From positions 1-64,000 of IMG/VR virus record IMGVR_UViG_3300020477_001008: DNA of 64,000 bases; one strand, given 5' to 3'. Under the pieces are notes generated by a model. That model did not search any database. It saw only the letters and a list, made by a program, of their open reading frames with translations, and was not told where the DNA came from. The stretch's first letter is position 1. Every line of letters begins with the position of its first letter. Position numbers and translations under genes: made by a program. Shown here piece by piece: positions 8,067-46,098 of this stretch.

Positions 8067-8402
8067 ATGGATTGGTCAAACTTATTACTCGCAGTTGGAT
8101 TGGTCTACGTGGCTTACGAGGCAGGTAGATGGGCTCAAAGAGAAGATTTTAAAAGAGATGCTGAAATTCACGTAATGATAATGAAAGCATTTGAAAAAGC
8201 ACAACAACAGAACCATTATCAAAGTATTGTGGACCATAATGAAGAGATGGAAAAAGCAAAAGAAGATTATGAAAAGGGTAATAAGGAACTGTGGGACGAA
8301 ATTGAACAAGATAGAGCTAAATGGGAAGCAGAAGAATTAGCCAATCAAATTGAAAAAACACTAGAAGACGACGATAAAAAAGATGACGATAGAACCAATT
8401 AA
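8067..8402 (+). CDS. Hypothetical protein, N-terminal TM plus coiled coil
   Basis: ORF downstream of promoter. Confidence 0.65.
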   Translation: MDWSNLLLAVGLVYVAYEAGRWAQREDFKRDAEIHVMIMKAFEKAQQQNHYQSIVDHNEEMEKAKEDYEKGNKELWDEIEQDRAKWEAEELANQIEKTLEDDDKKDDDRTN

Positions 8403-8703
8403 AGAGAAACTAGACGAAAAGATTAAACGATTAAACTCATCAAGGGTAGTGAAGAAAGTGACACCTAAGGGCGATTTATCTTGGTATGTGAAATGGATAT
8501 CAGTATTTCTTATACTGTTCGCCACAGTGGCTAGAAGTGTAGGTAGTTTGCCACAATACGATATGTGGTTTGGATTGTTTGGTACATTAGGTTGGGCTTG
8601 GGTTGGATATCTATGGCACGACAGAGCATTATTGGTTTTAAATTCTATTTTGGTTACATTATTAATAATAGGACTTGCAAATTTCTATTTTGGAGTGATA
8701 TAG
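8383..8703 (+). CDS. Small multi-pass membrane protein (DUF6552-like)
   Basis: WYVKW...WHDRALLVLN; three TM segments. Confidence 0.6.
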   Translation: MTIEPIKEKLDEKIKRLNSSRVVKKVTPKGDLSWYVKWISVFLILFATVARSVGSLPQYDMWFGLFGTLGWAWVGYLWHDRALLVLNSILVTLLIIGLANFYFGVI

Positions 8704-10812: not shown

Positions 10813-10820
10813 ATGTAAAA

Positions 10821-10868
10821 CGTTCATCTGGTATAACAGACGGAAGTAAGCACTAGCTGAAGGAACGC
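10821..10868 (+). ncRNA. Glutamine riboswitch (glnA / Downstream-peptide class)
   Basis: P1 CGTTC/GAACG, P2 TCTG/CAGA, junction CGGAAGTA, P3 AGC/GCT, GAA E-loop; 25 nt upstream of an ORF. Confidence 0.85.
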
Positions 10869-10893
10869 ACTTAACTGTAAAAAGGAGAGTGTT

Positions 10894-12868: not shown

Positions 12869-12894
12869 CTTTTATGTGCGTCAGCATAACACAC

Positions 12895-12922
12895 TTGCGT
12901 TTTTTAGCTTTGCTGGTATACT
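12895..12922 (+). promoter_or_regulatory. Promoter of the TC/CC-free operon (atypical -35)
   Basis: TTGCGT-N16-TATACT with TG. Confidence 0.65.
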
Positions 12923-12942
12923 AATAACAAAAAGGAGCAGTT

Positions 12943-13344
12943 ATGATATTATATACAAAACAATTTAGTAATGCAGTTAGACAAGTTATAAAGAAGCATA
13001 GAGCAAAAGTGCATACGAGATACACATTTGGCACGAGTGGGAGTTGCAGTATGTTTACTAGCGAAGGCAAAAGAAAGATTAGCTTTAACTGTATAGGAAC
13101 TAGAAAACAATTTAACTTAATAAGAAAAGATTTAGTTAAGTTGTTTGCAGGAACTTGGCAACAAAACTTTATGAAGTACAAATGGAACACGGACGGTTGG
13201 CACGATAAAAGAATGTTTAGGATAGAGGGAACTTGTTTGTTTGAGGACAAAACAAAGGAAGAGTTTGCAAAAATAATGAAACAAAGAACACACAACATAT
13301 TGTGGGGCAAGTTGGCAGGTGATACTACAGCTTGTGGAAATTAG
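12943..13344 (+). CDS. Basic, proline-free immediate-early protein
   Basis: SD AAGGAG; no Pro; Ser coded only by AGY. Confidence 0.8.
   Translation: MILYTKQFSNAVRQVIKKHRAKVHTRYTFGTSGSCSMFTSEGKRKISFNCIGTRKQFNLIRKDLVKLFAGTWQQNFMKYKWNTDGWHDKRMFRIEGTCLFEDKTKEEFAKIMKQRTHNILWGKLAGDTTACGN
13292..13335. promoter_or_regulatory. Tandem NrdR-box-like pair (32-bp spacing)
   Basis: acACAACATATTGTgg (13292) and ACTACAGCTTGT (13324), upstream of the -35 at 13349. Confidence 0.6.
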
Positions 13345-13348
13345 GGGG

Positions 13349-13376
13349 TTGACAAGTAGCAATACTATGTTAAATT
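13349..13376 (+). promoter_or_regulatory. Early promoter
   Basis: TTGACA-N16-TAAATT with TG. Confidence 0.75.
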
Positions 13377-13382
13377 AATATT

Positions 13383-13505
13383 ATGGTTAGCAAGTTAATA
13401 AAATTAATTACAAGTTATTACGCAAGTTATTATGCAAGTATTATTTTAATATTTGTAATACTAGCAATAATAGGTGCGTTGCTAACAGCTTGTACACTAA
13501 TATAG
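13383..13505 (+). CDS. Membrane microprotein, paralog A (MVSKLIKLITSYYASYYASIILIFVILAIIGALLTACTLI)
   Basis: Probably leaderless; aligns ungapped with 16123 and 23940 ORFs. Confidence 0.65.
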   Translation: MVSKLIKLITSYYASYYASIILIFVILAIIGALLTACTLI

Positions 13506-13515
13506 AGAGGACTAT

Positions 13516-14139
13516 ATGCAAAAGCAAAAGTATACAAAAGAAGAGATAGAAGCAGGCGTTAAGTTTTTACAAAACGCAAATGTAAACTTTGACTATGACA
13601 AAGACGATATGCAAATTAACTTTAGTATAGACGTTGGTTGCAGAATATGGACGGACGGTAGTAGCATATGGAGTAGGGGAGTTGTTAAAGGAGTTAAAGT
13701 TAGTAGCTTGAGTTTAACAGCAACACACAGCAAAGATATGTACGACAAAAAGGATTGGGCAAGTTTAAAGGACGAGGACTTGTACTGGAGTGGTGGACTT
13801 ACGGGTTATGCTTTTTACGATGGTAGTGGCAAAGACGGAACGTGGTACGATGGCGTTGACGACGAAAGTGCATTAATTAATAGGAACACTAGTAAACATA
13901 GCGACGGCTTAATTTACACGGACGACGGCTTTGTTAAAAATTTAATAAAGTACTTAAGAGACGAGTGTAGCTTTGATACTAGCTTTACAGACTTAACAAA
14001 GTTTTTGGACTTTAGCTATAGCGAACAAGGGATGCAGGATATGGAAACTGTAAACTTTGACGTGGAAATGGACGGGGACTTTTGGATTAAGTGTAATGAC
14101 GAGCTAGTTAAGTTTTTACATAACAAAAAAGTAGCTTAA
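13516..14139 (+). CDS. Acidic, proline-free immediate-early protein (207 aa, ends -VA)
   Basis: SD GAGAGG; no Pro. Confidence 0.85.
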   Translation: MQKQKYTKEEIEAGVKFLQNANVNFDYDKDDMQINFSIDVGCRIWTDGSSIWSRGVVKGVKVSSLSLTATHSKDMYDKKDWASLKDEDLYWSGGLTGYAFYDGSGKDGTWYDGVDDESALINRNTSKHSDGLIYTDDGFVKNLIKYLRDECSFDTSFTDLTKFLDFSYSEQGMQDMETVNFDVEMDGDFWIKCNDELVKFLHNKKVA

Positions 14140-14348
14140 TGAGTACACGTTACAGATACGACAAGGCAACGGACAATTACGTTGAGGACGAATGGCAAGG
14201 TACTATACTAGAACAATGCGAAGCACTTGTACTAGCATTAAAGGAAGAAAGTGCTACAGAAGACAATGTAGCACGAAAGGAAGAATTGGAAATGCTAGTA
14301 GGGGAAATAGAATATAGAATAGGAGCAGGAGGAAACTATTTAATTTAA
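14139..14348 (+). CDS. Small acidic proline-free protein
   Basis: TAATG coupling. Confidence 0.7.
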   Translation: MSTRYRYDKATDNYVEDEWQGTILEQCEALVLALKEESATEDNVARKEELEMLVGEIEYRIGAGGNYLI

Positions 14349-14354
14349 TATGAT

Positions 14355-14397
14355 ACTAGTTGTAGTGTTAGCTTTAATAGTTGGCACTACATATAGT
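14355..14397. promoter_or_regulatory. Tandem NrdR-box-like pair (31-bp spacing)
   Basis: ACTAGTTGTAGT (14355) and ACTACATATAGT (14386), upstream of the -35 at 14410. Confidence 0.6.
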
Positions 14398-14470
14398 GAA
14401 TTTAAGCGGTTGACAAATAATAGATGTGTGTTAATTTAAAACAATAAACCAAACGAGAGGTAAAAACAAA

Positions 14471-20890: not shown

Positions 20891-20970
20891 TTAGTAAAAC
20901 TGGCATAAAATAGGGGGTTGACATAATCCCCTTTTATGTTATTATGATTATATAAAGAGAGAGAGGTTAT

Positions 20971-21183
20971 ATGAAAAAAATAAGTAGAAACTTTTTTAAC
21001 ACATTAGCAACAATATTGATTGCAGTTGGTATTATTATGATTGCAGGTAGCGGTAATGATTGTGATGGTAAGTGTGTTGAGACAGCAAACACAATTAGCG
21101 AAATGTTAATGTATGCAGGAATAGGTTTAAGTTTTTTTATTACTGGTGCATTAGTTTTAATTAGTAATAGAGACGAGGCGTAA
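20971..21183 (+). CDS. Two-TM membrane protein
   Basis: Two hydrophobic helices flanking a CDGKC loop. Confidence 0.7.
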   Translation: MKKISRNFFNTLATILIAVGIIMIAGSGNDCDGKCVETANTISEMLMYAGIGLSFFITGALVLISNRDEA

Positions 21184-21833
21184 TGAAGAAACTTGTAATA
21201 TACTTTTTTTTAATTTATTTGTTCGCTTGGAAGTTAGTTGGTTATGCAGAAGCAAAAGACAAATACGATGAAGTTATTTTTACAGAACAAGCACAATTAA
21301 TTTTTGATACTACTTTACACGATTGGAAAGAGCACTATACAGATATCAATGAAGATCAAGTTAGATGTATGGCACAGAACATTTACTTTGAAGCAAGAGC
21401 AGAAAGTATGTTAGGTAAGACAGCAGTTGGCTTTGTGACTATTAATAGAGTTAATGATGATAGATGGCCTAACACCATTTGTAAAGTTGTTCATCAAGGA
21501 CCGCACAGAGAAAGTTGGAAAACTAAACAAGATGAGACACTAGCAGATGAAGATAGAATTTATTATCCTAGAAAGCACAGATGTCAATTCAGTTGGTATT
21601 GTGATGGTAAGAAAGATATTATTTGGGCAAACTATTCAGACGGTAGAACAATAGAACAGAATGCTAGAGCTTGGTTTGATAGTATAGTGATTGCACTAGC
21701 AGTTATGACTGGGCACGTCAACGATAACACAGACGGCAGTTTATACTATTACAATCATCACCTAGTATATCCTACTTGGGCTGATACACAAGAACTAAAA
21801 GTGATTATAGGTAATCACACATTTATGAGGTAA
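21183..21833 (+). CDS. SleB-like cell wall hydrolase (Hydrolase_2)
   Basis: NIYFEARAE, NRV...WPNTICKVV, CQFSWYCDG, IGNHTF; signal peptide. Confidence 0.9.
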   Translation: MKKLVIYFFLIYLFAWKLVGYAEAKDKYDEVIFTEQAQLIFDTTLHDWKEHYTDINEDQVRCMAQNIYFEARAESMLGKTAVGFVTINRVNDDRWPNTICKVVHQGPHRESWKTKQDETLADEDRIYYPRKHRCQFSWYCDGKKDIIWANYSDGRTIEQNARAWFDSIVIALAVMTGHVNDNTDGSLYYYNHHLVYPTWADTQELKVIIGNHTFMR

Positions 21834-22004
21834 TATGGATAGCGATTTATTTCAATATATACAGAAACTACAAGCAGAAAACAAGGCTTTAAAACTACAG
21901 GTTGCAGAAGAAACCAAAGAAAAGTACCAATTATATAACAGAATTAAGCACTTGACAGAATCCAAAAATAGTGTACATTTAAACAATAAAGAGAGGTAAA
22001 CTAT

Positions 22005-22985
22005 ATGGAGAAATTTACAACAAGACTTACAATAGCAATAATGGCGCTGATGGTTATGTTATCAATTTCAAATCAGGCTAAAGCAGGTTGGTATGATACC
22101 GCTAGTAAAGATCACAAGAAGTGGGCTAAAGAATTTTATCAAGTAAAAGACAAAGACAAATATACTAATGTTCACGAAACATTATTATCAGATGATATCA
22201 AACTAAAGTTTGGTTATATTAAATTTCCTGGAATCGAAATGAAGAGTTCTTTAAAGTCTGGTAAGAATAACTTTGCAGAAGTAATTGGTGCACAAGAGAT
22301 TGCTTACAATGGAGAAACATTTCATTCTATTATAGTTGACCATAGTAAATGCTACAAAGGTGAATGGGGTAATGACTGTGGTTCAAGTGGTGGTAGCAGT
22401 AGATCAGAATTAAAAGCAAAAGGTTATACATTTAACGAAGGCACAGAGAAATGGATTAACTATGCGGTACTGCCTGCAAACAATATTTTATTTGATGGTA
22501 GAAGCAGAACATTCACAGTTGGACAATGTCATCCACAAGATGATGACGGTGAAAGAATTACTTGGATGATCAAGTTCAGAGACAATACATTAGAATTAAA
22601 TCATAACTTCAAAAGCACACAACAAAATGATGGTACTTGGAAAAGAGGTTATGAAGTGTTTAGAACATTAAAGACATTTTCAGCTAATGAAAACAATGGT
22701 AGCTTTGATTGGACTAACATCAGAATCAACTTTAAGAATAGCAAGAAGGCAGATGGTAAATTACACATTTGGATAGATGGCAAACTGGCTTATGAATACA
22801 CAGGTCCTACTAACTGGAACGATGGTAAAAGAGACAAATGTCAGTTTAAATTTGGTTTATACACTAATGGTAATTTGACATCACCCTACAAAGAGCATAT
22901 GGAGAATATGACAGTATTTGTAGACTATATGGCTATTGCTAAAACAGAAGCAAAATTAGAGAAATTGCTTAAGAAAGACAAGTAA
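22005..22985 (+). CDS. Secreted polysaccharide lyase-like (concanavalin/jelly-roll) protein
   Basis: Signal peptide; RSEL, GQCH, GKLHIWIDGK, FKFGLY. Confidence 0.7.
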   Translation: MEKFTTRLTIAIMALMVMLSISNQAKAGWYDTASKDHKKWAKEFYQVKDKDKYTNVHETLLSDDIKLKFGYIKFPGIEMKSSLKSGKNNFAEVIGAQEIAYNGETFHSIIVDHSKCYKGEWGNDCGSSGGSSRSELKAKGYTFNEGTEKWINYAVLPANNILFDGRSRTFTVGQCHPQDDDGERITWMIKFRDNTLELNHNFKSTQQNDGTWKRGYEVFRTLKTFSANENNGSFDWTNIRINFKNSKKADGKLHIWIDGKLAYEYTGPTNWNDGKRDKCQFKFGLYTNGNLTSPYKEHMENMTVFVDYMAIAKTEAKLEKLLKKDK

Positions 22986-23652: not shown

Positions 23653-23943
23653 ATGAACAGAGGAGCAATTATGCAAAAAGAAATGTTAAAAGGCCAAGGT
23701 GCTAATCCACTACCATTTGATTGTGTAGTATTGGATAGACCTGAAACGATCAAGAACCCATATAGCGGCGAGTCAGTAGAACTACAACCAGATGCAGTAG
23801 CAGTATATGATTGTATCAAAGGTGCTGAACTATTAGCACAAGGTATAGACGATGGCGGACATCCGTTATGGTGCAAGGTTAGAGAAGGCCTAGATTGGTT
23901 TAGACAATACTATGCCAAAGAGTATATGGTATTGTTAGATTGA
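23653..23943 (+). CDS. Hypothetical early protein (start may be 23671)
   Basis: Own promoter; SD GAGGAG. Confidence 0.7.
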   Translation: MNRGAIMQKEMLKGQGANPLPFDCVVLDRPETIKNPYSGESVELQPDAVAVYDCIKGAELLAQGIDDGGHPLWCKVREGLDWFRQYYAKEYMVLLD

Positions 23944-24056
23944 TTAAAAAGATCATTAAACTGGTAGCCAGTTACTATGCAGGATACATAGGTGGCTGGT
24001 TGCTAGTGTTTACCCTACTAGCGATTGCAGGTGCAATAATCTGTATCACTTGCTAG
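23940..24056 (+). CDS. Membrane microprotein, paralog C (MIKKIIKLVASYYAGYIGGWLLVFTLLAIAGAIICITC)
   Basis: TTGA overlap; aligns with paralog A. Confidence 0.6.
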   Translation: MIKKIIKLVASYYAGYIGGWLLVFTLLAIAGAIICITC

Positions 24057-24129
24057 ACTTTTCAAAATAAAAAAAAGAAAAAAATATTTTTCGACCTCGA
24101 CCGTGTATATGCGTCTGGGGTCGGAAACC

Positions 24130-24507
24130 TGAGAATGGGGCTAACGATTGCTAATAAAAAAAGTGGGCTATTATATAGGCGGCGAGATAAAAAGGGCTAT
24201 ATGCAATAGAGGTAAAAGCGAATGCTTTTTAAACTAAAGCACTTGCTTTGGTTTAGACTAGGAAAACAAATGTGGTTGAGGAAACTTGGTTGCTAAAAAA
24301 ATTACGCAGTAAAATTTTATGGGCTAGTGTATAGGCGACGGACTTATATGCATAGCTGATATGGTTAGGTATGCAAAACTAACATAACGGACTTATATGC
24401 AGTTAAAACGTACTTTAATACATTAGAAGCACTTTGATACTACTGAATATGGTTATGACGCTTAAACAGAAGGATATGCACGTTTAAAGGCGGTATTTAC
24501 AACGTAC
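24130..24507 (+). other. Second TC/CC-free tract (apparently non-coding)
   Basis: All Cs (about 48 by hand count) preceded by a purine; repeats (CGGACT)TATATGCA. Confidence 0.85.
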
Positions 24508-24946
24508 CTACCATTAGATCCTGTGGATAGTAAAAAGAACCCTAGAGCATAAGAATACTGTGGATCTCTCGGGCTAGTCAACACTTGAGCGAAGCGAATG
24601 CTTATAAGGGTTATTCAATATAACCACTGTGTCTACTGTATACCACTAGTTGTGAAAAGTTCAGCCCACCCAATTCCAAGGATCACTATAACGTTCCAAT
24701 TCACTTTTATATGGCTTTGCACTCAAACGTAGTACTATTACAAAACCAATAATAAGGATATAAAGCGTCATATAAAGTATATATGATTAACCAGGGTTAG
24801 AACACCTTTAGCTACTGTCAGAACGGTGGATTGTTCCTAGAGCTGAAAGCGAAAGGCTGACCGTACTATTAAGTGGTAGTTAACTAGCTTGAAAAATCGT
24901 TCGTACACATAAAAATTAATACTAATACATCTCTATTAAAATATAA

Positions 24947-25115
24947 CACATACACATATTAGTAAAAATATATCGCGGCATACACATACAGCAAATAATA
25001 AAAAACACATACGCCAAAATTTTTAAACGCATACACACCTCTAAAATAAAAAATCGCATACAAACCTATGTAAAAATACACATACACATACATAAAAAAA
25101 TAGGACGCATACACA
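24947..25115 (+). repeat. Iteron-like (C/G)CATAC repeats separated by A-tracts
   Basis: CATAC at 24949, 24979/85, 25008, 25030, 25057, 25081/87, 25108. Confidence 0.75.
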
Positions 25116-25166
25116 ATTGGCTGTATAATAGCTTGACTTTTAAGCAATATATGTTATATTACTACT

Positions 25167-25406
25167 ATGGGAATTAACTTTGATCTTCCAGAAGAGCAAC
25201 CAATTGAAACAGTATGGATTACTTGTACAGATAAGAACAAGACTATGGAAGCCAATGTAGTTTCTAAAAGACAGCACGAAATTGTTATGGTTACTAAAGA
25301 AGGTAATATTAGATTAAGTTTTAAAAAAGCAAACAGCTTTGGTAAAATCAAAGAAGGAGTTTGGACATCTAATATGGCAGGATATGAATTTGTATATACA
25401 GAATAA
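25167..25406 (+). CDS. Hypothetical protein, probably leaderless
   Basis: TTGACT-N16-TATATT promoter 25133-25160; ATG 6 nt after the -10. Confidence 0.7.
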   Translation: MGINFDLPEEQPIETVWITCTDKNKTMEANVVSKRQHEIVMVTKEGNIRLSFKKANSFGKIKEGVWTSNMAGYEFVYTE

Positions 25407-25886
25407 ATGGCAACAGAAAAAACTAAAAAACTACTGGACAAGCTCAACGATATTACGAGCACTCATAAAGATCTTAACGTACCCAAACACATACCTACTA
25501 GCAATATTATGTGGGTATCAGTTCTAGATATGTACGATTTTCCTAAACACTATGACAAAGTCAAAAAGCACAAAGAAGTAGATGAGGATGGTGTAGAGGA
25601 TTCTTGGTTTTACTATGATAGAATATATGGAGCAAGTCATACGCAAAGATTGATACAAGCAGATGGTTCAGAATATCAAGGCAAAATTTACGATAGACGT
25701 AAAGTTATAAAAAGAGAAGATGGTACTAAATTTTATACTAGATGTCATCAGACAGCAGATGGAAGATGGTTTGATGGATCTGGAATGCCTATGACACCAC
25801 CCACAGAGATAGACAATGAACAAGATGAAAAACAAATACCTGAAGAAGCCCAGTCCGAAGAGAAGGAAACTGGCTCGCAAGAATAA
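25407..25886 (+). CDS. Hypothetical protein
   Basis: Directly abuts upstream stop. Confidence 0.7.
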   Translation: MATEKTKKLLDKLNDITSTHKDLNVPKHIPTSNIMWVSVLDMYDFPKHYDKVKKHKEVDEDGVEDSWFYYDRIYGASHTQRLIQADGSEYQGKIYDRRKVIKREDGTKFYTRCHQTADGRWFDGSGMPMTPPTEIDNEQDEKQIPEEAQSEEKETGSQE

Positions 25887-29479: not shown

Positions 29480-30661
29480 CTATCTGATTTTAATGATATT
29501 CATTAGCTCTGATAACTCAGGAAACGTTTTATCAAATGACTCTACTCTTACTAAATCCATTCTGTATATGTGCCTCTTAAACTCACCTATTTTATTACTA
29601 CTATCGCTGTTTTCCATAAATTGAATTACTTGGTTGAATCCTTTATAATTATAGTCTAAAAGCCTATCTTTTACAACCTCTTTTAAGAAGCTTGGTAATG
29701 TAGAGATGTTATAATGCTTGGGTTCGTGTAATGTATTTAGGTATACTTTCATACCAAAATTATCAGTCCAGTCTATGAATTCAGGCAAGTAAAAAGCATT
29801 AAAAATATTAACAGTATGACATATAGATAAATCTAGCTTATTTGATTCATATGTTTGCCACACTTCTAAATTCTTCAGTACTTGCTCCCATTTAGCTGGG
29901 TGTCTTTGGTATTCAAATTGTTTACCTATACCATCGATACTAAAATGCACATCAACATATTTGAAATGCGGAAATATATTATCAAGAGCATCTAATGGCA
30001 ATTGTGTTCCATTTGTGTTATAGTGTAAGCTGATTTTATGTGCGTGTCCTTGTTTTATAATCTTATGTAAAAGATCCAAATGTTCTTTTATCATAAACGG
30101 TTCACCACCTGTAAAATCCAAATGCTCTAGTACAGGAATTAGTGATTCAACATTTTTCCAAAACACTTCTGATTTTTCTGGCCAATCAAGTCTTTCATAA
30201 AACTTAATATCTTTATCAATTATATCATATTTTCTTTGTTCTGAAATCCATTTAGATGAGTATTGTGGAGAACAAATTCTGCATTTAAGATTACATATAT
30301 TTCCAAGTTTTAAATCCAAATATCTAGGAGCAGATTCTTCCCATATGATTTTATCATTAATTAAATGCTTGTATTTTGCATTATCTCTTACTCTTTTAGA
30401 TGCTTTACCCGACATTTCTTCCATCCAACATCTATGGCATCCACGTGGTTGTGTGCCAGATAAAAACCTTTTACGTATAGTAGCTAGTTCTTCACTATTC
30501 CATATTTCTTGGAATTCTTCACGTTGGATTTTATATTCTTGACCATTTTCCTTTTTTAGTGTATCTTTATACATACAGCACGGTTTTACTGTGCCGTTAG
30601 GTTGGACTTCTAAACCAGTCCAAGGAAGAATACAAAAATTTTGAGGTAATTTATTATCCAT
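29480..30661 (-). CDS. Radical SAM/SPASM-Twitch protein
   Basis: CNLKCRIC, GGEP, FCILPW..PCC..CHRC. Confidence 0.9.
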   Translation of the reverse strand: MDNKLPQNFCILPWTGLEVQPNGTVKPCCMYKDTLKKENGQEYKIQREEFQEIWNSEELATIRKRFLSGTQPRGCHRCWMEEMSGKASKRVRDNAKYKHLINDKIIWEESAPRYLDLKLGNICNLKCRICSPQYSSKWISEQRKYDIIDKDIKFYERLDWPEKSEVFWKNVESLIPVLEHLDFTGGEPFMIKEHLDLLHKIIKQGHAHKISLHYNTNGTQLPLDALDNIFPHFKYVDVHFSIDGIGKQFEYQRHPAKWEQVLKNLEVWQTYESNKLDLSICHTVNIFNAFYLPEFIDWTDNFGMKVYLNTLHEPKHYNISTLPSFLKEVVKDRLLDYNYKGFNQVIQFMENSDSSNKIGEFKRHIYRMDLVRVESFDKTFPELSELMNIIKIR

Positions 30662-31405
30662 ATGTTAAATGTCGCTTTTATCGGTTGTAGTTGGACGCAA
30701 GGTTACAATATTCCATATACTAGTACTTATCCGTATATTGTACACGAATTGTTAAACAAATACAAGGTTGAAAACAGAGTAGTTAATGCTGGAAGAAATG
30801 GTTCCAGTTGGGTTACATATCCAAGTACTATAAAATATATTAACGAAACGTATGATGCTGATATATTTGTAGTTCAGCATACAACACCGGACAGAGGTTT
30901 ATTGCAGTTTTCATCTAGCCAGTGGAAGTACCAAAAAATAGCTAGAGATCACGATGTGTATGAAAACTATTTGCAGTTATGGGATAACACACAAAGTTAT
31001 TATCATTTAACAATAGGAATGGCTGAACAAATAATTGCTGATGAAAAATCAGAATTAGTACAACATATTTTTCACGAAATACAACGCAAGAGTACATTAA
31101 CAAAACAACAAATAATTGATAGAGTTTCTTATTGGTATAATCAAGAAAGACATCATCCTCTTAACTTTGAAAAATATACAGAAGCAGTTGAGTATTGTAA
31201 TTATTATATTAAAGATAAAAACAAAAAAATTGTAAATTTATTTTGGTTAGATGATGAGTTTTGTAAATCATTTACAAATCTACCCAATAAAATAGTTGTA
31301 CAAAACGAAATAGATTTTAAACAATATGCAATTGATTCTGGATATCACTTTGATGATAAAGGAAATAAAATATTAGCTGAGGTACTAATACCCCAGCTTT
31401 TATAG
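30662..31405 (+). CDS. SGNH/GDSL-like protein
   Basis: GCSWT, NAGRNG, DSGYH. Confidence 0.7.
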   Translation: MLNVAFIGCSWTQGYNIPYTSTYPYIVHELLNKYKVENRVVNAGRNGSSWVTYPSTIKYINETYDADIFVVQHTTPDRGLLQFSSSQWKYQKIARDHDVYENYLQLWDNTQSYYHLTIGMAEQIIADEKSELVQHIFHEIQRKSTLTKQQIIDRVSYWYNQERHHPLNFEKYTEAVEYCNYYIKDKNKKIVNLFWLDDEFCKSFTNLPNKIVVQNEIDFKQYAIDSGYHFDDKGNKILAEVLIPQLL

Positions 31406-31558
31406 GATTATTTTTTAGCTTTCTTTTTAGGTTTACTCTCAACTTTTTTTGGAGGTTTACCAACTAAAAATTCTGTTAGTGCTTCTAAGTCTTTTATAAC
31501 TTTGTCGATAAATTTGGCCATATTAATCTCCTTGTTAATTGTTTAATAGTATATATGA

Positions 31559-31756
31559 TTATGATTTGTCTTTAGGAACTTTGACCCAACGGTCAACTTC
31601 TGTACCTTTTCTATTAGTATACTCTACTCTTAGAAACTGTGTACCTTTTGGTGCCGAGCCTGCCACAGATTTAAATATTTTTTTAAAGCCTAAGCCTTCT
31701 TTTTCTTGTGTAAACTCTTTATCATCGGTTATTTTAATTTTTATCTTTCTACCCAT
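31559..31756 (-). CDS. Small basic protein (start MGRKIK)
   Basis: ORF track, start adjusted. Confidence 0.6.
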   Translation of the reverse strand: MGRKIKIKITDDKEFTQEKEGLGFKKIFKSVAGSAPKGTQFLRVEYTNRKGTEVDRWVKVPKDKS

Positions 31757-31848
31757 AACTTTACTTATCCACAAAAATTTCGGGGGTACTAACACCCCAG
31801 GTGGTGGCGTTTCGGGTACTGTAGGGGTCTTAAAACAAATCTTTTTTT

Positions 31849-33072
31849 CTATGATTTAGCTATTTTTTCAAGATCTAGCAATTCTGGAAATATATCACGC
31901 CAATTTTCATTTCTTATATTATCTAAACGATTTGTGATTTCATACCAGTCTTTTATTAAGTGAGAGTAGTCAGCTTCATACAAATAACTTATTAGCGATT
32001 CATATCTTGTATGATTAGCATCTGTATTTTCTTTCATCCACGTTTGAGCATTAGTCCATTTCTCTGCAAGTTTATCTTTCATATCTTTTGGTAGTATTTG
32101 TATTCTCAAATGCTCAGGAGTTTGCAAAGGATTTAATAAACTATGTGGACCAACCCATTCCTTTTTAATCCAATCAATATGAAAATCTGAAACGTGAAAA
32201 CTATTAAACACGTCAACACACGACGCAACAAAAAAGAAAGCCCTAGGACATTTTTCAAAAACATTTTTTCTATTTTCTTCAACTTGCTCCCAGCTTTGCC
32301 CAGCACGAAGATATTCACCTCGCTTATGTGTTGCATCTAAACTAGCACCAATTTCTACATATTCAAACTTGTCCCATTCTTTGAATACGTCCATTCCTTT
32401 ATAAATTACTTGGCTAAAGTTTGTATTGTACTTTAGTCTTACGTGAAACATTTTCTTTTCTACTAATTTTTTTAATATTCTATAATGCTCTTCCATTATT
32501 AATGGTTCACCACCGGCAAAATATACTTCTTCTAAACCATCTACATATGGCTCAACTACTTCCCAAAATCTTTTTTCGTCTTTGTATGGTCTAATAACTT
32601 TAGAGTGATCTGGTTTACTGAATAATTTAGTTTGGTCTTCATACCAGCTTGATGATAAATCTGGACCACAAGTTCTACATTTAAAGTTACATAAGTTACT
32701 AAATCTAAAATCAATGTAAGGTAAATTAACTTTGTCAACAGTACCATCTTCTTTAGTTGATTCTACAACATCCCAATGATGATTTAATTTTTCATTAGAC
32801 CAAGTTCTAGTTGTATTAATACTATGTCTTTCTTGTTCGTAACAACGTGTACAGATCTTATTAGCTTTTCCATTTAGTAAGTCTTTACGTAATTGTTTTT
32901 GTTGCGGAGAATTCCAAGCTTGTTCTAATGTTATTTCTTTTAAGTTACCCATTATATCGTTACTATCACTCATACAACAAGTCAATACTCTACCATCTGG
33001 CCACGTGTGTAAATGTGTCCACGGTATCATACAAAAAGTTTTTGATTTAAGTAACTTATCTTTATCTAGCAT
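31849..33072 (-). CDS. Radical SAM/SPASM-Twitch protein
   Basis: CNFKCRTC, GGEP, FCMIPW..CC..CTRC. Confidence 0.9.
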   Translation of the reverse strand: MLDKDKLLKSKTFCMIPWTHLHTWPDGRVLTCCMSDSNDIMGNLKEITLEQAWNSPQQKQLRKDLLNGKANKICTRCYEQERHSINTTRTWSNEKLNHHWDVVESTKEDGTVDKVNLPYIDFRFSNLCNFKCRTCGPDLSSSWYEDQTKLFSKPDHSKVIRPYKDEKRFWEVVEPYVDGLEEVYFAGGEPLIMEEHYRILKKLVEKKMFHVRLKYNTNFSQVIYKGMDVFKEWDKFEYVEIGASLDATHKRGEYLRAGQSWEQVEENRKNVFEKCPRAFFFVASCVDVFNSFHVSDFHIDWIKKEWVGPHSLLNPLQTPEHLRIQILPKDMKDKLAEKWTNAQTWMKENTDANHTRYESLISYLYEADYSHLIKDWYEITNRLDNIRNENWRDIFPELLDLEKIAKS

Positions 33073-34072
33073 TGATTTCGCTTTTCCAACTTGGAATAAG
33101 CAGATTTTCAAACACACTTCTGTTATGAGAAAGTTTTGCTTTTATATCATCTTGTTGATATAATTCTGTCCATTCCTCAGGTGTTTTATGTACAAGAGTT
33201 TCTATCTCGTTCCACATAGCACTATATCTTTCATTGTAAGGTAAACTATCAAATGCTTCGTGGTTATATAATTCTGTGTAAGGTTCAAAGCCATTATCTA
33301 TTAAGAACTTCATTGTATCCTTACAACCGTGAACGATAAAAATTTTATTGTACAAAATTGGTTTCCAAGTTTTTTCTGTTATAAACAAACTAGTATCACT
33401 AACAATACTTTCATTTACTATTTCAAATCCCGCATAGTGATAATTTGGAGGTAATATTTCTTGATTTTGTCCTTCGTCAATTTCTTTACCTGTAAAATCT
33501 AATTTAAGATCATCTCCTTGAAATTTTGGATTAGTAAAATAATGATCAGGCACATTATTACCATATCTATTAATCCAAGATATCTCGCCAAATCCATCTA
33601 ATCCATTATCAAACAAATCAGTGACTAATTTTGCTCTATGTGTTTTTGCCGCTCCATTTAAACAAATAAATCTTCTAGTTTTTCTTTCATATGCTTTGGG
33701 TTGTTTAATACTTTTATTTTGTTTGTTTATTATTGTTCTGGATAGTAATTCAAAAGGTGCTGACACTATGTTTACAGGAAAATCTTTACGTTCAGTTCCT
33801 GCAAACCATTTATCTACATTTTCTTTTAGATTAACATCAGCCATTACTAAACTAGCATTATCTTCAGGCCAACCTTCTAAAGCTTCACGTACATACGGTA
33901 AAAAATTTTCTTTTGTTTGGAAATGTATTTCACCTTCCCACACTCTTTTAATTACAATATGATGTGTTTCTTTTTTATCTTGATTATTACGAATCCAATA
34001 ATTTAGGGCATTAAGTTGTCCTAAAATATCGTGTGTACAATCTAAATCAACTATGTGAAGTTCTTTATTCAT
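33062..34072 (-). CDS. Glycosyltransferase-like protein (E..F.TEK..KP family)
   Basis: FICLNG...HR, NES..FITEKTWKPI, GF. Confidence 0.6.
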   Translation of the reverse strand: MNKELHIVDLDCTHDILGQLNALNYWIRNNQDKKETHHIVIKRVWEGEIHFQTKENFLPYVREALEGWPEDNASLVMADVNLKENVDKWFAGTERKDFPVNIVSAPFELLSRTIINKQNKSIKQPKAYERKTRRFICLNGAAKTHRAKLVTDLFDNGLDGFGEISWINRYGNNVPDHYFTNPKFQGDDLKLDFTGKEIDEGQNQEILPPNYHYAGFEIVNESIVSDTSLFITEKTWKPILYNKIFIVHGCKDTMKFLIDNGFEPYTELYNHEAFDSLPYNERYSAMWNEIETLVHKTPEEWTELYQQDDIKAKLSHNRSVFENLLIPSWKSEINAR

Positions 34073-34539
34073 TTGTTTAATCTCTTTAACATATTTACTC
34101 TTTTTTGATGACGCCCACCTTCAAATTTAGTTTGGAAAAAATCTTCTATCATATATTGTGCTGTATCAGTATCTGTATAATCTGCACCTAAACACATAAC
34201 ATTCATATCGTTGTGTTCACGTGCTTGTTCAACATCATACCTATCTCTACAAACTACTGCTCTAATATTTTGAAATCTATTAGCCGCAATACAAACACCA
34301 AAACCAGATCCACATATTAAAATTCCGTGTGTATATATGTCAAATGTTTCACCAAACTTTTTAACATAATTAGGATAATCACATTTATCATTTGTATATG
34401 TTCCTACGTCTTGCATAACAGCAATTGGAAATGGTCCTTCATTATCGCTGTTAACAGGACACACCCAATCCATTAATTCATTTTTTAATTCAAGTCCTCT
34501 ATGGTCCGATCCCCACAATAAATCTATTGTTTTAGCCAT
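34069..34539 (-). CDS. rpiB: Ribose-5-phosphate isomerase B
   Basis: GSDHRG, DYP, ICGSGFG, AREHND.NV, FEGGRH. Confidence 0.9.
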   Translation of the reverse strand: MAKTIDLLWGSDHRGLELKNELMDWVCPVNSDNEGPFPIAVMQDVGTYTNDKCDYPNYVKKFGETFDIYTHGILICGSGFGVCIAANRFQNIRAVVCRDRYDVEQAREHNDMNVMCLGADYTDTDTAQYMIEDFFQTKFEGGRHQKRVNMLKRLNK

Positions 34540-35852
34540 TCTGTAAATCCTTCTAAATATTTTTCCTTGTTAAGTTTTAAAAACAGCTCTCTGTTATATA
34601 AAAGCTTGTCGTATATTTCAAAATACATACGATGTAAATCTTCATTCTTCATACCACACATTAAATTAATTTGTCTCCAGGCACTATCAATTCTTTCTGC
34701 TGAATTTTCTATCCAATCATAGTTACTATCAAACATTGGTTCAAATGTTTTGTAACCACAATCTTGTAGATGTGCTAGTGTACCACGTGAGCCAACTACA
34801 ATAAATGGATGTAGTTGTAATATTGGCTGATATACTTTTTCAGTTATAAACAACGGATCACCTGGTGCTGATTCGCAAACAGTCTCATTAATAATTGAAA
34901 AATAACTATTGGAATAGTGTTCAACTTTCATTCTTCTTTGATTTAATTGTTCACCTATATCATCAGCTGTGTTATCTAAAACAATCGGTATGCTTTCTTT
35001 TAAAAACTTTTGCATATCGTCAACTGCTTCTTTTGGATCACCTTTAGTAAACTGTTCAGCATCTTTTAAAGTAAAACTATCTACACTAGGTGTGAAATAA
35101 CGATTTAAGAAACTTGTATAACCATCTTTTAAATAGTTTCTTTTATACAATTGACTCATAATCCATATTCTATGTGGTCTAGGATTTGCATTACGACAAA
35201 CAAATTTCATTGTTCTAATTTCACTATCATCAACTGTATCTGGATGTACTAGTTCATCTGCAACTTTTATTTCACGCATTCTATCACGTGAAAAATACAT
35301 ACGATCAGTTTCTAAACGATAATTTAGTTCAAATATATTCAAGCCAAATGTTTTAATATTTGATTGCAGTCTACGTTTTTTAAGATATGTTTTAAAGTTT
35401 TCTTCCATACGCAAGTCACCAAACACAAGATTAATCTTGTCATCAGGTATACCCTTATCACCAAGAGTCCATAACAAGTCGTCCATAAATCTTGGCATAT
35501 TTAAATTGAAGCCTTCTGTAGGAAACCATATTAATATTTTAATTTGATCGTTGCATTTTATTTGATTTAATATATCTTCATCAATAAAATGAAACACGTT
35601 CTCGTAAAAGAAACTTAGATCAATCCATTCTGGTTGTATATGAAACCAAAATGTTTCTCCACTTGTTGCTAAAGCATCTGGGTTATTTTTTGTATATTCT
35701 ATGTTACAGTAATCTAATATCTCTTCAAGATATTCATATTTTACATTACCCCAATTGTTATGATGTTCATTGTTTCTTTTCCAGAAAGGAATGCAGTTAG
35801 GCAAAGGCCTACCATCTATCCACGTTTGATATAATAAATTAATTTTCTTCAT
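34524..35852 (-). CDS. Glycosyltransferase-like protein (TEK family)
   Basis: PRPHR, SIINET..FITEKVYQPI...HPF, GYKTF. Confidence 0.6.
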   Translation of the reverse strand: MKKINLLYQTWIDGRPLPNCIPFWKRNNEHHNNWGNVKYEYLEEILDYCNIEYTKNNPDALATSGETFWFHIQPEWIDLSFFYENVFHFIDEDILNQIKCNDQIKILIWFPTEGFNLNMPRFMDDLLWTLGDKGIPDDKINLVFGDLRMEENFKTYLKKRRLQSNIKTFGLNIFELNYRLETDRMYFSRDRMREIKVADELVHPDTVDDSEIRTMKFVCRNANPRPHRIWIMSQLYKRNYLKDGYTSFLNRYFTPSVDSFTLKDAEQFTKGDPKEAVDDMQKFLKESIPIVLDNTADDIGEQLNQRRMKVEHYSNSYFSIINETVCESAPGDPLFITEKVYQPILQLHPFIVVGSRGTLAHLQDCGYKTFEPMFDSNYDWIENSAERIDSAWRQINLMCGMKNEDLHRMYFEIYDKLLYNRELFLKLNKEKYLEGFTEWLKQ

Positions 35853-36597
35853 CTTGTATCCAATGTTCTACAACTTTATCAGCAAATGCTTTATGACATT
35901 CAGTTGACGGGTGACCAATCATAATTTTCTCGCCTTTTATTTCTGCCCAACCTTGTGGTTCTTTATTAATATGATCTTCTAACAAATTTCCAGTAAAGTC
36001 GTTTGCAATACCCCATTCAGCTAGTCCACCATCTTTACCGTGAAACCAAAACTGACTCCAATCAACTTGGTTATACCAAAATTCTAATTCGTCTCTTCCT
36101 TTAATTACACCTGCGTGATATTCATCTGTAAAAGTCTTTTGCCAGCAAAATAGTTTTAATCTTACGTTATGTACTTTACAATAATTTTGTAAAGCAACTA
36201 TTGAGCATAATGTTCTTAAAGCCTGTGTAACATTATGAAAATTATATTTCATATAATATTTTATAGGTTTTGATATTTTAGAATCTGCATCATTAATCCA
36301 GTCTAAATTACCTGCACTCTTTAGCCAAGTATAATTTTCTTTAGCTACAACGTGGTCACTTGTATGTTCTAACTTTCCTTTTGTAGTAACTTCAAATCTG
36401 TCTATTCCTGATATTTGCATTATAGCCATATCGGGTTTGAAATTAGAAATAGCTTTCATTAAATTTCTAATATTCATTTCATTACCACCACCACCTTCAG
36501 CAACATTGAACAATTCATATCTTTGTTCTAACCAATTTGCCCAGCTGTCTGGTGCGTGTGTAAAGGAACAACCTGATGTAACTAATCTTACTTGCAT
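35839..36597 (-). CDS. SGNH-like protein
   Basis: GCSFT, NVAEGGGGN, GHP. Confidence 0.65.
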   Translation of the reverse strand: MQVRLVTSGCSFTHAPDSWANWLEQRYELFNVAEGGGGNEMNIRNLMKAISNFKPDMAIMQISGIDRFEVTTKGKLEHTSDHVVAKENYTWLKSAGNLDWINDADSKISKPIKYYMKYNFHNVTQALRTLCSIVALQNYCKVHNVRLKLFCWQKTFTDEYHAGVIKGRDELEFWYNQVDWSQFWFHGKDGGLAEWGIANDFTGNLLEDHINKEPQGWAEIKGEKIMIGHPSTECHKAFADKVVEHWIQDEEN

Positions 36598-36609
36598 TGG
36601 ATATATTCT

Positions 36610-37557
36610 CTATTCTTTGTTATTATTTAAGCTACTATTAATGATTGATAGTGTGCTTTTAGCATTGTTCTTTAGTACTTGTACATTATAGTCAGTTATA
36701 CTGTTAAATGGGGTATAATCAAGTTTTAAGGCGGATTTTAAAGCGATTGTAAGCTGAAGTAGTCTCTTGCTATGCTCTTTTTCAAAGTCATAATTTTCAT
36801 CTATTAAATTGGAAAAAGTCTTATATCCTTTCCTTTTTAAGTTAGTTAAAAAGAAAGGTGTTGATGCTATAATAAAAGGGTGTTTATTAGCAATAGCCCT
36901 ATATGTTTTTTCAGTTGGATGAAACTCTTGATTTCCATCGTAGTGCGTTTCTGCTATTAAACTAAAATTAGTAACACGATATAATCGTTCATCATATGGG
37001 TAGCCAAGATAATGATTTCCTTCTACTTGAATATCATCTAATGTTTTTGTAATTCCAAATAAAGAGGAGTATCCTTCTCCTAATATTCCAGCACCCATTA
37101 ATAAATCATATAAATTTTTTCTGTTATATTTGTTTGCTTTACCACCTAGAAACAAATATCTAAGACTGCCTAAATGTTTGTTTGCAGTTTTACATTCTTT
37201 GTTAACAAATAATCTATGATATGCATCTAATTCAAATTGGTCTATAATTATATTTTTTCTTCCTGGTGCAAATTTTTCAAAAGAACTTAATGAAAAAATT
37301 ATTATATCCTGTGTTGGATTTAAACTAGCAAATTGTGTTTTTAAATGTTCGTCGTGTTCGTATGGATGCTCTCTTATATAAGAATATAAAATAGGAATTG
37401 TACTTCCTAATGTATCTTCAAATACTGGTTCATTGTGCGAACTAGCAATAGCAACAAAGTCTGCTTTGTTAATATTATCAACATATTCTACATCTATAAA
37501 TCTTGTTACAGATTCTAAATCATAAAAATATTTTGGATGTTTATATACCTTAACCAT
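36610..37557 (-). CDS. Glycosyltransferase-like protein (TEK family)
   Basis: SLIAET..TEKTYRAI..HPF, GYKTF..IDE.YD. Confidence 0.6.
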   Translation of the reverse strand: MVKVYKHPKYFYDLESVTRFIDVEYVDNINKADFVAIASSHNEPVFEDTLGSTIPILYSYIREHPYEHDEHLKTQFASLNPTQDIIIFSLSSFEKFAPGRKNIIIDQFELDAYHRLFVNKECKTANKHLGSLRYLFLGGKANKYNRKNLYDLLMGAGILGEGYSSLFGITKTLDDIQVEGNHYLGYPYDERLYRVTNFSLIAETHYDGNQEFHPTEKTYRAIANKHPFIIASTPFFLTNLKRKGYKTFSNLIDENYDFEKEHSKRLLQLTIALKSALKLDYTPFNSITDYNVQVLKNNAKSTLSIINSSLNNNKE

Positions 37558-37741
37558 CTTTGCCAGACTCTTTAAAGTCTATGTCAATTCTCTTTTCAAC
37601 ATCTTTTTCATTAAAAATGCTAGTTGCAATAACTGTTGTAATTGCTAACATTGGCATAGTATATACCATAGCTTCTGTCCATATCGCAATACTATATGTT
37701 GGTATTGCTATAATTAATATTTTATAAATTAATTTAACCAT
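37550..37741 (-). CDS. Small two-TM membrane protein
   Basis: Hydrophobic; overlaps neighbours. Confidence 0.55.
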   Translation of the reverse strand: MVKLIYKILIIAIPTYSIAIWTEAMVYTMPMLAITTVIATSIFNEKDVEKRIDIDFKESGKDG

Positions 37742-38651
37742 ATAATATTTTATTTTTAATCTCTCCACAATCAATTGATTCAGCTAATCTTCTATTATTC
37801 ATAAGCTTTGATGGAGATAATTTTTGTTGTATTTCTTCTATACTTAATTGTGTAAATTTTAACAGTTCATCTAAAGGATCATTATTATAATCAAGTAATT
37901 CGTCATACAATTGAAATCCCATTTTCTTTAATTCTTCGTAATATCTATCTGGATCACCTACACCATAATATAAAAATATTTGGAAGTTTAATATTGGCTT
38001 CCAAGTTTTTTCAGTAAAGAAAACGTGCTTGTCTTCGTGTGTTTCATTAATAACATTTAAGAAACTATCTTTCATAATATCTAATGGAACACTCTTGTCA
38101 TCTGCTTTTACTTCATCAACTGTTTTATCTAGAGTATAAAGATTTACTTTTTCTTCTGTTTTGAACCCGTGGTCGTATGTACCAATTAGGCTTACATAGT
38201 TATTTTTTATTAAGTTATGTTCTTCACAAAATTTAATAAACTTAATTCTTTTATGTTTAATTGCACCATTAAATGAACAAAAATGTTTTGACCTTGTAAA
38301 TGACATACCATTTAATCTATCTTCCTTCTGTTGAATATCTAAAAAATGATAAGGATAATGTAAAACTTTTCCAGCAAAAGGTACACCTTTACAATTTAAA
38401 TTTGGTGTAACAAATGTAATATCATAAGGATGTATATTTTCTAGTTGTCTAGTCATACAGTCAACAACTGTTTCACCAGACTTCATAACAGGGCCAGGAA
38501 TATCTGCTTCCCAAGGTTCAAAAATAATTAACTTTTTTTCTCCACTACCAATAAATTCATCTAGGTTTGGTAATGGATTATCGCAAAATAAGTCAGGCAT
38601 ATTTTGACTTGGTGTTGCTCTGTAATAAGGATTCTCAATAATAAAAGACAT
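37734..38651 (-). CDS. Glycosyltransferase-like protein (TEK family)
   Basis: NVINET..FFTEKTWKPI, GF. Confidence 0.6.
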   Translation of the reverse strand: MSFIIENPYYRATPSQNMPDLFCDNPLPNLDEFIGSGEKKLIIFEPWEADIPGPVMKSGETVVDCMTRQLENIHPYDITFVTPNLNCKGVPFAGKVLHYPYHFLDIQQKEDRLNGMSFTRSKHFCSFNGAIKHKRIKFIKFCEEHNLIKNNYVSLIGTYDHGFKTEEKVNLYTLDKTVDEVKADDKSVPLDIMKDSFLNVINETHEDKHVFFTEKTWKPILNFQIFLYYGVGDPDRYYEELKKMGFQLYDELLDYNNDPLDELLKFTQLSIEEIQQKLSPSKLMNNRRLAESIDCGEIKNKILYG

Positions 38652-39091
38652 TATTCGTATTCAAAGTTCTGGGTTTCACTATTCACTTGTAATTCTTTTG
38701 CACCATTGCGTAAATGAAATCTTCTTGCCATTTCTGTTAGTGGAGATAATGTTACATATCTTTTTATTTCTGGCATTTCTTCTTTCAACCACTTTTGTGC
38801 TTCAAAAACTATTTCTCTTCCAGAACCTTTTTTATAACTCCATAATGTATAAAACATAGCTATTGAACCTTCTTTTCCATCTTGTATTCGTTGCTTGGAA
38901 AAATCTAGCAACTCTTTATCTGTAATTGGTACTTCATTTGTAAACATCATACAAATTACGGCGTCAACCATTCCTTCGTTTTCTAGGACTAAAACTTTTC
39001 CACCGTCCATCTTTTCATCTATTGATATGCCAGGCCTAACTGGATCATCATCTAATAGTTGTAGCTCATCATCTTGGATTTCTCTTAACAT
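38651..39091 (-). CDS. GNAT-like phage protein
   Basis: FYTLWS..KGSGR, VTLSP, RFHLRNGA. Confidence 0.5.
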   Translation of the reverse strand: MLREIQDDELQLLDDDPVRPGISIDEKMDGGKVLVLENEGMVDAVICMMFTNEVPITDKELLDFSKQRIQDGKEGSIAMFYTLWSYKKGSGREIVFEAQKWLKEEMPEIKRYVTLSPLTEMARRFHLRNGAKELQVNSETQNFEYE

Positions 39092-39106
39092 AATTGTTGT
39101 CCTGTT

Positions 39107-39871
39107 CTAATCGTCTAAATCAAATAACCACGGTTCAATGATTGATAGTGTAAAAAGATATTGGGCTTCTGTTGCCGGATGTCCTCCGGGCATATCATCA
39201 AAACCTTTATCAATACACCATTCTTTCATACCACACTTCTTATTATAGAACCACCAGGTGTCTTTGTCAATCAGCTTTTCAAGATGTTTTGTCATTGGAT
39301 ACTCTGTACGGAATAAATCAGTATCCCAAGCTTTAAAATTCAATAATTCAATCTCATTGGCTTTGCAATATTGTTGGACAAGTAGGATATTTTCCAATGT
39401 ACGCATCATTTGTTCTTCCCTAGTATGATAGTTTTTAATGTATTCTTTAACCAATTTATTAACTATATCACTTTTGGTTTTCCAAACATCGTAGCCCCCA
39501 CCTGGCTTGATAAAGCTACCTTTAGTAGAACAATGCCATTTACCAGTTAATATTTGGTTAGTAAACCCAGCTTCATCTTTCATTGTTTCATATATGTCCA
39601 TATAAAGTGGATGTTCTTGATTTACATATAAACTAAATCTATTAGGATCACTCCACCCAATTATAACGTGAGTAATATCGTCTTGATGTTTTTGTAATCC
39701 TTTAATAACATTTCTTGCTATTAAAACATTATCACTAGCCATTTCTGAAACGTTTATTACTTTAGATTCTTTCCAAGGGTCTTTGGCTTTATTAATATGA
39801 TTAGGCCAAGCAATATTATCTTTCATAATATGTGCTGTAAATGAATCTCCACCTGTTAATACTGTTGTCAT
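39107..39871 (-). CDS. SGNH-like protein
   Basis: GDSFT, WS...R, GHP. Confidence 0.65.
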   Translation of the reverse strand: MTTVLTGGDSFTAHIMKDNIAWPNHINKAKDPWKESKVINVSEMASDNVLIARNVIKGLQKHQDDITHVIIGWSDPNRFSLYVNQEHPLYMDIYETMKDEAGFTNQILTGKWHCSTKGSFIKPGGGYDVWKTKSDIVNKLVKEYIKNYHTREEQMMRTLENILLVQQYCKANEIELLNFKAWDTDLFRTEYPMTKHLEKLIDKDTWWFYNKKCGMKEWCIDKGFDDMPGGHPATEAQYLFTLSIIEPWLFDLDD

Positions 39872-43659: not shown

Positions 43660-43662
43660 ATT

Positions 43663-45409: not shown

Positions 45410-45410
45410 A

Positions 45411-46040: not shown

Positions 46041-46098
46041 ACGTAAATTCCTAAATAAATTGCTATCCACAATACTATCGCCCAAAATATTATAGTTC

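Follow-up and report, generated by a model that had tools for sequence, protein, structure and literature searches.

Sequence avoidance is a known way for viruses to escape host factors, and several described systems bear on the locus analysed here. The bacterial termination factor Rho suppresses phage gene expression (PMC3526286); each Rho monomer has a pocket for a single-stranded 5'-YC dinucleotide (Y, pyrimidine), and Rho utilisation (rut) sites are arrangements of such dinucleotides in G-poor RNA (PMC9499579). Known phage countermeasures (lambda N/nut, HK022 put RNA, P4 Psu, Rho-antagonising RNA elements) are proteins or RNA elements that modify RNA polymerase or inhibit Rho. In eukaryotic viruses, TC is depleted under APOBEC3, CpG under ZAP and UpA under RNase L. 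Messages lacking nuclease sites are represented by ACA-less mRNAs resistant to MazF and by restriction-site avoidance in phage genomes, while transcripts prime replication in the R-loop origins of T4 (oriF, oriG) and in ColE1 (the RNA II primer).

We describe a 379-nt non-coding stretch in an uncultured marine jumbo phage whose sense strand contains no TC or CC, a rule shared by a few other stretches of the same early region and kept in relatives. The avoided dinucleotide is exactly the one read by the primary binding site of Rho, and the affected RNAs are inferred to be early transcripts made by host RNA polymerase, one of them untranslated; however, protection here would be passive, through removal of every recognition dinucleotide over 0.4-1.6 kb, and an action of Rho is inferred from sequence alone. 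As in the eukaryotic viruses, a two-base motif (YC being the APOBEC context) is purged strand-specifically in early-expressed regions, but those footprints are statistical depletions across genomes, whereas here the absence is total yet confined to a few transcription units, the replacements are not C-to-T products, and no bacterial counterpart enzyme is known. The logic of nuclease-site-free messages, that a sequence which must survive an endonuclease carries none of its sites, would apply; restriction avoidance, though, affects both strands and motifs of 4-6 bases, MazF sites are 3-7 bases, and no enzyme has been described for a strict two-base class on one strand. The comparison with T4-type origins rests on an untranslated or promoter-proximal transcript in a phage with a T4-type capsid protein, followed by conserved blocks and an array of short repeats, but no middle-type promoter, unwinding element or initiation event was identified, one of the tracts covers whole genes, and no YC rule is described for those origins. 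We found no report of a total, strand-specific ban on a two-base class that is confined to a few phage transcription units and strong enough to force proline-free proteins.

The YC-free tract and its setting

The window analysed is a stretch of 64,000 nt, the first 64 kb of a 242.6-kb virus record (IMGVR_UViG_3300020477_001008), 32% G+C and estimated to be 55% complete, which comes from Tara Oceans and other marine metagenomes and recurs in many samples. The genome encodes a T4-type major capsid protein whose closest cultured relatives are those of the jumbo phages PA5oct, Phosso, Vibrio phage 2.275.O, Serratia phage BF and their kin, all of Proteobacteria. Positions 8-27.6 kb form an early region of small + strand ORFs behind many TTGACA-N16-(TG)TAnnnT promoters, which implies transcription by host RNA polymerase. 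Homologous loci on contigs of relatives are denoted L001, L002 and so on, and a complete 328-kb relative is denoted G001. The relevant features are as follows.

12882-14449, + strand: T1, a 1568-nt YC-free early operon with ORFs of 133, 40, 207 and 69 aa and no proline codon at all
20931-21223, + strand: T3, a 293-nt YC-free tract starting inside an early promoter and covering a 70-aa membrane ORF; weaker on its own, with tracts at the corresponding position in L046 and L065
23619-23646, + strand: nearest upstream sigma-70-like early promoter (TTGACG-16-TATTAT, with TG), the probable source of transcripts entering T2
23940-24056, + strand: 38-aa membrane ORF directly upstream of the non-coding region, a paralogue of the 40-aa ORF inside T1
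24057-25166, + strand: conserved 1.1-kb non-coding region between the small membrane ORF and the next early promoter, containing T2; no ORF of 60 aa or more
24090-24126, + strand: predicted hairpin P1 just upstream of T2, with YCs mostly in its stem
24129-24507, + strand: T2, the 379-nt tract described here (G 23%, C 13%, every C preceded by a purine)
24138-24576, + strand: five same-strand GGGCTA motifs (24138, 24165, 24194, 24321, 24571), two of them extended to GGGCTA..TATAGGCG; the genome has 16 + strand copies
24214-24229, + strand: predicted hairpin AAAAGC-GAAU-GCUUUU inside T2
24231-24254, + strand: predicted hairpin AAACUAAAGC-ACUU-GCUUUGGUUU inside T2, cleanly deleted in L002
24508-24620, + strand: conserved 3' segment with YCs, predicted to pair with the GR-rich 5' strands of T2 in long-range closing helices
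24790-24900, + strand: second highly conserved block of the non-coding region
24946-25113, + strand: G-poor array of CATACA / ACACATAC repeats (8 CATACA, all on +), iteron-like or protein-binding
25133-25160, + strand: next early promoter, marking the end of the non-coding region

The observation made in the first-pass annotation, that all of about 48 consecutive Cs follow a purine in DNA without an ORF of 60 aa, is confirmed. The last YC before the tract is the CC at 24128-24129 and the next is the CC at 24507-24508; in 24130-24507 there are 48 C, 25 as AC and 23 as GC. The tract's own composition predicts about 20 YC, none of 200,000 mononucleotide shuffles reached zero, and the Poisson estimate is 2e-9; using the YC density of the flanking sense-strand early genes (0.047 per nt), P = 1.4e-8, or about 3e-4 after allowing for every gap on both strands of the 242.6-kb genome. 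Genome-wide, the three longest TC-free gaps are 1611, 398 and 296 nt, where chance would give a longest gap of about 222 nt, and the longest CC-free gap (1599 nt) coincides with the first of them. T1, T2 and T3 all lie on the sense strand of the early region, and the complementary rule (no GA/GG) yields nothing comparable. The tracts are an extreme on top of a general purine loading of the mRNAs, in that the sense strand of genes on either strand of the window carries 2-3 times fewer YC than the antisense strand (about 20-25 against 50-70 per 500 nt). No paralogy of the tracts was found within the genome. T2 is non-coding: its longest + strand ORF is 29 aa and 1-nt indels between relatives break all frames.

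Conservation, structure and borders

Near and distant nucleotide searches of cultured phages with the region gave nothing, nor did tblastn of the 207-aa protein; a search of G001 with the T2 DNA found no homologue, and exact-motif scans of IMG/VR found only the L002 contig. One metagenome scan added ten more contigs, so that the element is now represented by six lineages of uncultured marine jumbo phages, 63-92% identical to one another. The non-coding region is syntenic and alignable over its whole length in L002, L054 and L062-L071, and in the pairwise alignment with L002 it is at least as well conserved as the small ORF upstream. Every lineage has a YC-free tract of 346-416 nt at the homologous place, with the polarity of the element and bounded by the same conserved motifs, GGAAACC and ACG(A/T)ACCTA. 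The three distant lineages differ from the window by 78-87 substitutions inside the tract, plus inserts of up to 41 nt, and still have no YC: shuffling the derived bases among the differing positions gives 4-8 YC on average with P(0) at most 0.003, and placing the same number of substitutions at random gives 10-14 YC and never zero in 20,000 trials. Significance against shuffled sequence and conservation in relatives were the two points on which the observation had been staked beforehand, and it holds on both. A more distant contig (L052) has a shorter YC-free stretch of 252 nt in a non-coding gap at the corresponding place, with motifs recognisably similar by eye, although nhmmer did not detect it.

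The coding tract obeys the same rule. The 207-aa ORF of T1 (13516-14139) belongs to a family of at least 483 proteins, all metagenomic and without a Pfam family, and 94 of the 120 best hits contain no proline. Its predicted structure is confident (pLDDT 84, pTM 0.83), but Foldseek found no match in the PDB and there was no informative Atlas neighbour. Homologous loci are YC-free around this gene in every lineage sampled; in L046, L050, L052, L075, L076 and L077, the gene together with 106-704 nt upstream is completely YC-free, in tracts of 725-1352 nt that run 19-187 nt past the stop codon. In G001, where the gene is inverted, the GA/GG-free gap at this gene is the most extreme gap of all 120 dinucleotide pairs in the 328-kb genome. 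Compared with a homologue that still has some YCs, the window's gene uses AGT for TCT serine and TTG for CTC leucine, and Glu or Thr in place of two prolines, which is recoding rather than C-to-T decay. Junctions between a codon ending in Y and a codon starting with C are also absent (0 observed against about 14 expected). The rule is therefore a dinucleotide rule and not a codon or tRNA effect, as the first-pass annotation had argued from the non-coding tract.

RNAalifold on the six lineages, which give limited covariation power, predicts 104 pairs, 10 of them with compensatory changes. P1 has 11 pairs, 3 with both sides changed and pairing kept, and the hairpin at 24214-24229 has two columns with compensatory A-U to U-A changes. 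The repeats and hairpins listed in the first-pass annotation are present; its two hairpins are kept in most relatives, but the CGGACTTATATGCA repeat is not conserved outside the closest lineages. The GR-rich strands inside the tract cannot find Watson-Crick partners within a YC-free sequence and are predicted to pair with 24508-24620 (alignment columns 101-150 with 518-568), although this support is mostly invariant or G-U changes, with one compensatory pair. The overall folding energy is not exceptional (MFE z-score -1.2 on + and -0.6 on -), and the case for a structured RNA, which we consider probable for the first 0.5 kb, rests on the local hairpins and on conservation. No Rfam 15 family matches at gathering score, and at E up to 10 the only hit is a spurious 21-bit match. 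No convincing conserved promoter lies between 24057 and 24129 or inside the element. Contigs from three metatranscriptome runs cover the genes on both sides but nothing between 23770 and 25180, while a probable DNA run covers it evenly; being based on contigs only, this is weak evidence that the element is not an abundant RNA. One contig of run X2 (depth 46) joins 24093 to 25826, skipping 1732 nt that include the whole non-coding element and two ORFs, but its flank is only 21 nt and it may come from a relative or be spurious.

Polarity always follows local gene orientation, including in G001/L001, where the inverted locus carries its tract on the other strand. Tracts begin near promoters (T3 inside the promoter spacer, T1 13 nt before a -35 element) and end at the next promoter, at the next start codon or at a terminator-like hairpin. 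Where YCs reappear at a border they are often the C-rich arm of a hairpin: in L046 at 9651 (between units), in terminator-like hairpins of L052 at 6920 and of L076 and L077 after the stop codon, in T3 at 20927 and at the flanks of T2. In L076 the only YC cluster at the 5' end of the tract (2252-2290) is CCTCC, 22 nt into the first ORF, which could pair with the GGAG of its own ribosome-binding site. In one clade (L001, L048, L073), the 207-aa gene is the last of its unit and faces a convergent gene; there the upstream 360-664 nt and the first 100-185 nt of the gene are YC-free, but the rest carries 11-18 YCs, still about half to a third of expectation. This contrast rests on one clade against seven lineages.

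Candidate readers of pyrimidine-C

What the analysis establishes is that T2 forms the 5' two-thirds of a conserved, non-coding, probably structured element in the early region of this phage, that its sense strand has been kept free of every 5'-YC-3' through extensive divergence, and that a neighbouring early operon follows the same rule. That T2 is transcribed, that its transcript escapes a factor recognising single-stranded 5'-YC-3' (in the RNA or in the displaced DNA strand), and that this factor is Rho are inferences. In the literature searched, apart from eukaryote-specific usages, "YC dinucleotide" refers to two readers, Rho and APOBEC-type deaminases, and the primary binding site of Rho is the only factor known with exactly the required specificity. 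We therefore favor Rho, but only tentatively (probability about 0.35). In this view, RNA polymerase would leave the last translated ORF at 24056 and enter about 0.5 kb of untranslated RNA on which Rho, which attacks untranslated and foreign transcripts, could not load for want of an exposed YC; YCs would reappear only in the 3' strands (24508-24620), which would pair at once with the waiting GR-rich 5' strands, and the RNA would be completed instead of being terminated. The completed RNA could be a regulator, a decoy or a primer for the repeat array downstream.

Several findings fit this reading. TC and CC are both zero while AC and GC are kept or enriched (1.1-1.7 times the flanks) and C content hardly drops; G is at or above C in all 80-nt windows across 24120-24480, so that there is no C>G bubble; and the tracts follow the sense strand, with border YCs mostly in predicted stems. 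T2 is non-coding and lies downstream of an early promoter, although the metatranscriptome contigs cover its flanks but not the element itself, so that its transcription is inferred. The 5' polarity in the terminal-gene clade would be expected for premature termination, and the nearest cultured relatives by capsid protein infect Proteobacteria. However, Rho binds cooperatively to several YCs, so that depletion would suffice, and total absence over 0.4-1.6 kb together with proline-free proteins points to a single-hit process. In seven lineages the tract runs to the very end of the 207-aa ORF and 19-187 nt beyond, a region that a pure termination model constrains only weakly. About 50 other promoter-like sites in this genome, and 86 in G001, show no depletion of YC downstream of the start, so Rho avoidance would have to matter only for a few units. 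PA5oct (L072) infects a Rho-containing host, yet it has no such tract in its first 50 kb, and its RNA-seq-annotated putative lncRNAs in the early region (8263-8498 and 21951-22401) have normal YC content (19 and 39 YC). Searches for phage-encoded NusG/RfaH, Psu or Rof found none, and no known anti-Rho or NusG-like gene links the locus to Rho. The GGCGGTA inside the tract resembles the start of the RfaH ops element, but the other 12 copies in the genome show no comparable setting and the resemblance was dropped.

Alternatively, one could envision a single-hit enzyme, which would better explain the absolute absence, the coverage of whole units including UTRs up to the 3' hairpin, the restriction to a few transcripts and the lack of tracts in PA5oct (consistent with a host-specific factor). 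An endoribonuclease cutting single-stranded RNA at YC, such as a host abortive-infection or CRISPR-associated HEPN-type RNase or a nuclease brought in by the phage itself, could destroy a transcript with any single cut, so that a few first-responder RNAs (T1, perhaps encoding an antidote, and the T2 RNA) would carry no site at all; this would also account for the proline-free proteins and for tolerance of YC in stems. Some HEPN RNases have dinucleotide preferences, for example UC for one Cas13b and C-C for one Csx1, but to our knowledge no bacterial RNase with strict specificity for both UC and CC has been described, no RNase gene has been tied to the locus, and in the terminal-gene clade the mRNA of the 207-aa ORF would not be protected although its upstream region stays YC-free; we regard this as doubtful, though not far behind Rho. 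Attack on the displaced DNA strand in R-loops or transcription bubbles, by an APOBEC-like ssDNA cytosine deaminase followed by uracil excision or by a C-specific ssDNA nuclease, appears less likely still. YC is the classic context of cytosine deaminases, viral R-loops are APOBEC3 targets in HSV-1 (PMC13185267), the polarity is the same as for RNA, and a strand break would be a single-hit event explaining zero tolerance and constraint on UTRs; R-loops would be favored in the untranslated T2, which may belong to a T4-type R-loop origin, and CATACA repeats and conserved blocks lie downstream; this reading keeps part of the origin or R-loop idea of the first-pass annotation. However, the codon replacements are not the C-to-T products expected from deamination, C/T differences between relatives in the early region are less frequent after a pyrimidine than after a purine (3.6% against 5.6% in L065), the predicted helices use many G-U pairs, which suits RNA better than DNA, and no CDA-fold deaminase was found in the phage genomes. 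A further possibility, which we regard as doubtful though nearly as probable as Rho, is that marine bacteria possess an undescribed immune effector, a nuclease or deaminase attacking single-stranded nucleic acid strictly at pyrimidine-C, and that these phages answer with stealth early transcripts, a proline-free antidote operon and a structured non-coding RNA, such that the effector's specificity could be read from its footprint before the effector itself is found.

The interpretation offered in the first-pass annotation is only partly supported. It held that the minus strand must stay unmodified for a host enzyme, such as RNA polymerase making an origin primer or R-loop, or a helicase/primase; a link to a host enzyme acting around early transcription is plausible, and an origin-primer or R-loop role remains compatible with the repeat array downstream, but the core inference of a modification-free zone is not supported and we consider it very unlikely. 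Strand-specific absence of a short motif is what such a zone would look like, but searches of this genome and of G001, restricted to PF00145, PF01555 and PF00383, found no C5, N4 or N6 DNA methyltransferase and no CDA-fold deaminase; the rule also governs a translated operon and follows gene orientation. The minus strand of the tract is rich in YC (GA+GG on the + strand about 0.12-0.13 per nt, the same as in the flanks), so the duplex would still be heavily modified, and this one-sidedness also rules out restriction-site or PAM avoidance. At least five radical-SAM ORFs (1541-2764 on +; 29480-30661, 31849-33117, 42127-43659 and 46099-47484 on -) could be invoked as modifying enzymes, but at least two of them carry SPASM domains, which are typical of peptide or protein maturases. 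A chance gap, compositional artefact or scar of a single hypermutation event is refuted by conservation and statistics: although T3 alone (293 nt, C only 7%) would be borderline, P is about 1e-8 to 1e-9 for T2 and 3e-33 for T1, independent assemblies from many samples and sources carry the same tracts, and codon comparison and substitution spectra exclude hypermutation. The remaining probability belongs to explanations not considered here.

If Rho is the reader, the tracts represent a new, purely cis-encoded way for a phage to defeat termination and a natural experiment on how few YCs Rho needs; if it is not, they point to an unknown YC-specific defence enzyme in abundant marine bacteria. Either way, the rule gives a simple computable signature for finding similar stealth RNAs in other phages, and the locus reveals a conserved non-coding region of about 1.1 kb with no Rfam family.

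Other features of the genome

A full-length glutamine riboswitch aptamer (glnA leader, RF01739; 61 bits, E 4e-11) lies at 10819-10871 (+), inside the early region, and raised the possibility of a cyanophage; cyanobacteria are not known to possess Rho. This was rejected because there is no psbA in this genome or in the complete G001 and because the capsid protein is closest to those of PA5oct-like and related jumbo phages of Proteobacteria. Small paralogous single-pass membrane ORFs (38-40 aa, motif KLI..SYYA) sit inside T1 (13383-13505) and directly upstream of T2 (23940-24056), and a similar mini-ORF lies in the YC-free tract of L001 (about 4740-4805, - strand). The stretch 24892-25104 (+) holds the longest GA-free and second-longest TG-free gaps of the genome, in the CA-rich CATACA / ACACATAC array, which is conserved in L054 and partly in L002 and may represent iterons or protein-binding sites. 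The minus-strand radical-SAM ORFs sit in a long gene block (29480-47484) that also contains a LacAB_rpiB gene, with NAD synthase and glucosaminidase genes just upstream on +. At the end of the window, very large minus-strand ORFs of 2046 aa (57689-63829) and 839 aa (55161-57680) presumably encode virion proteins.
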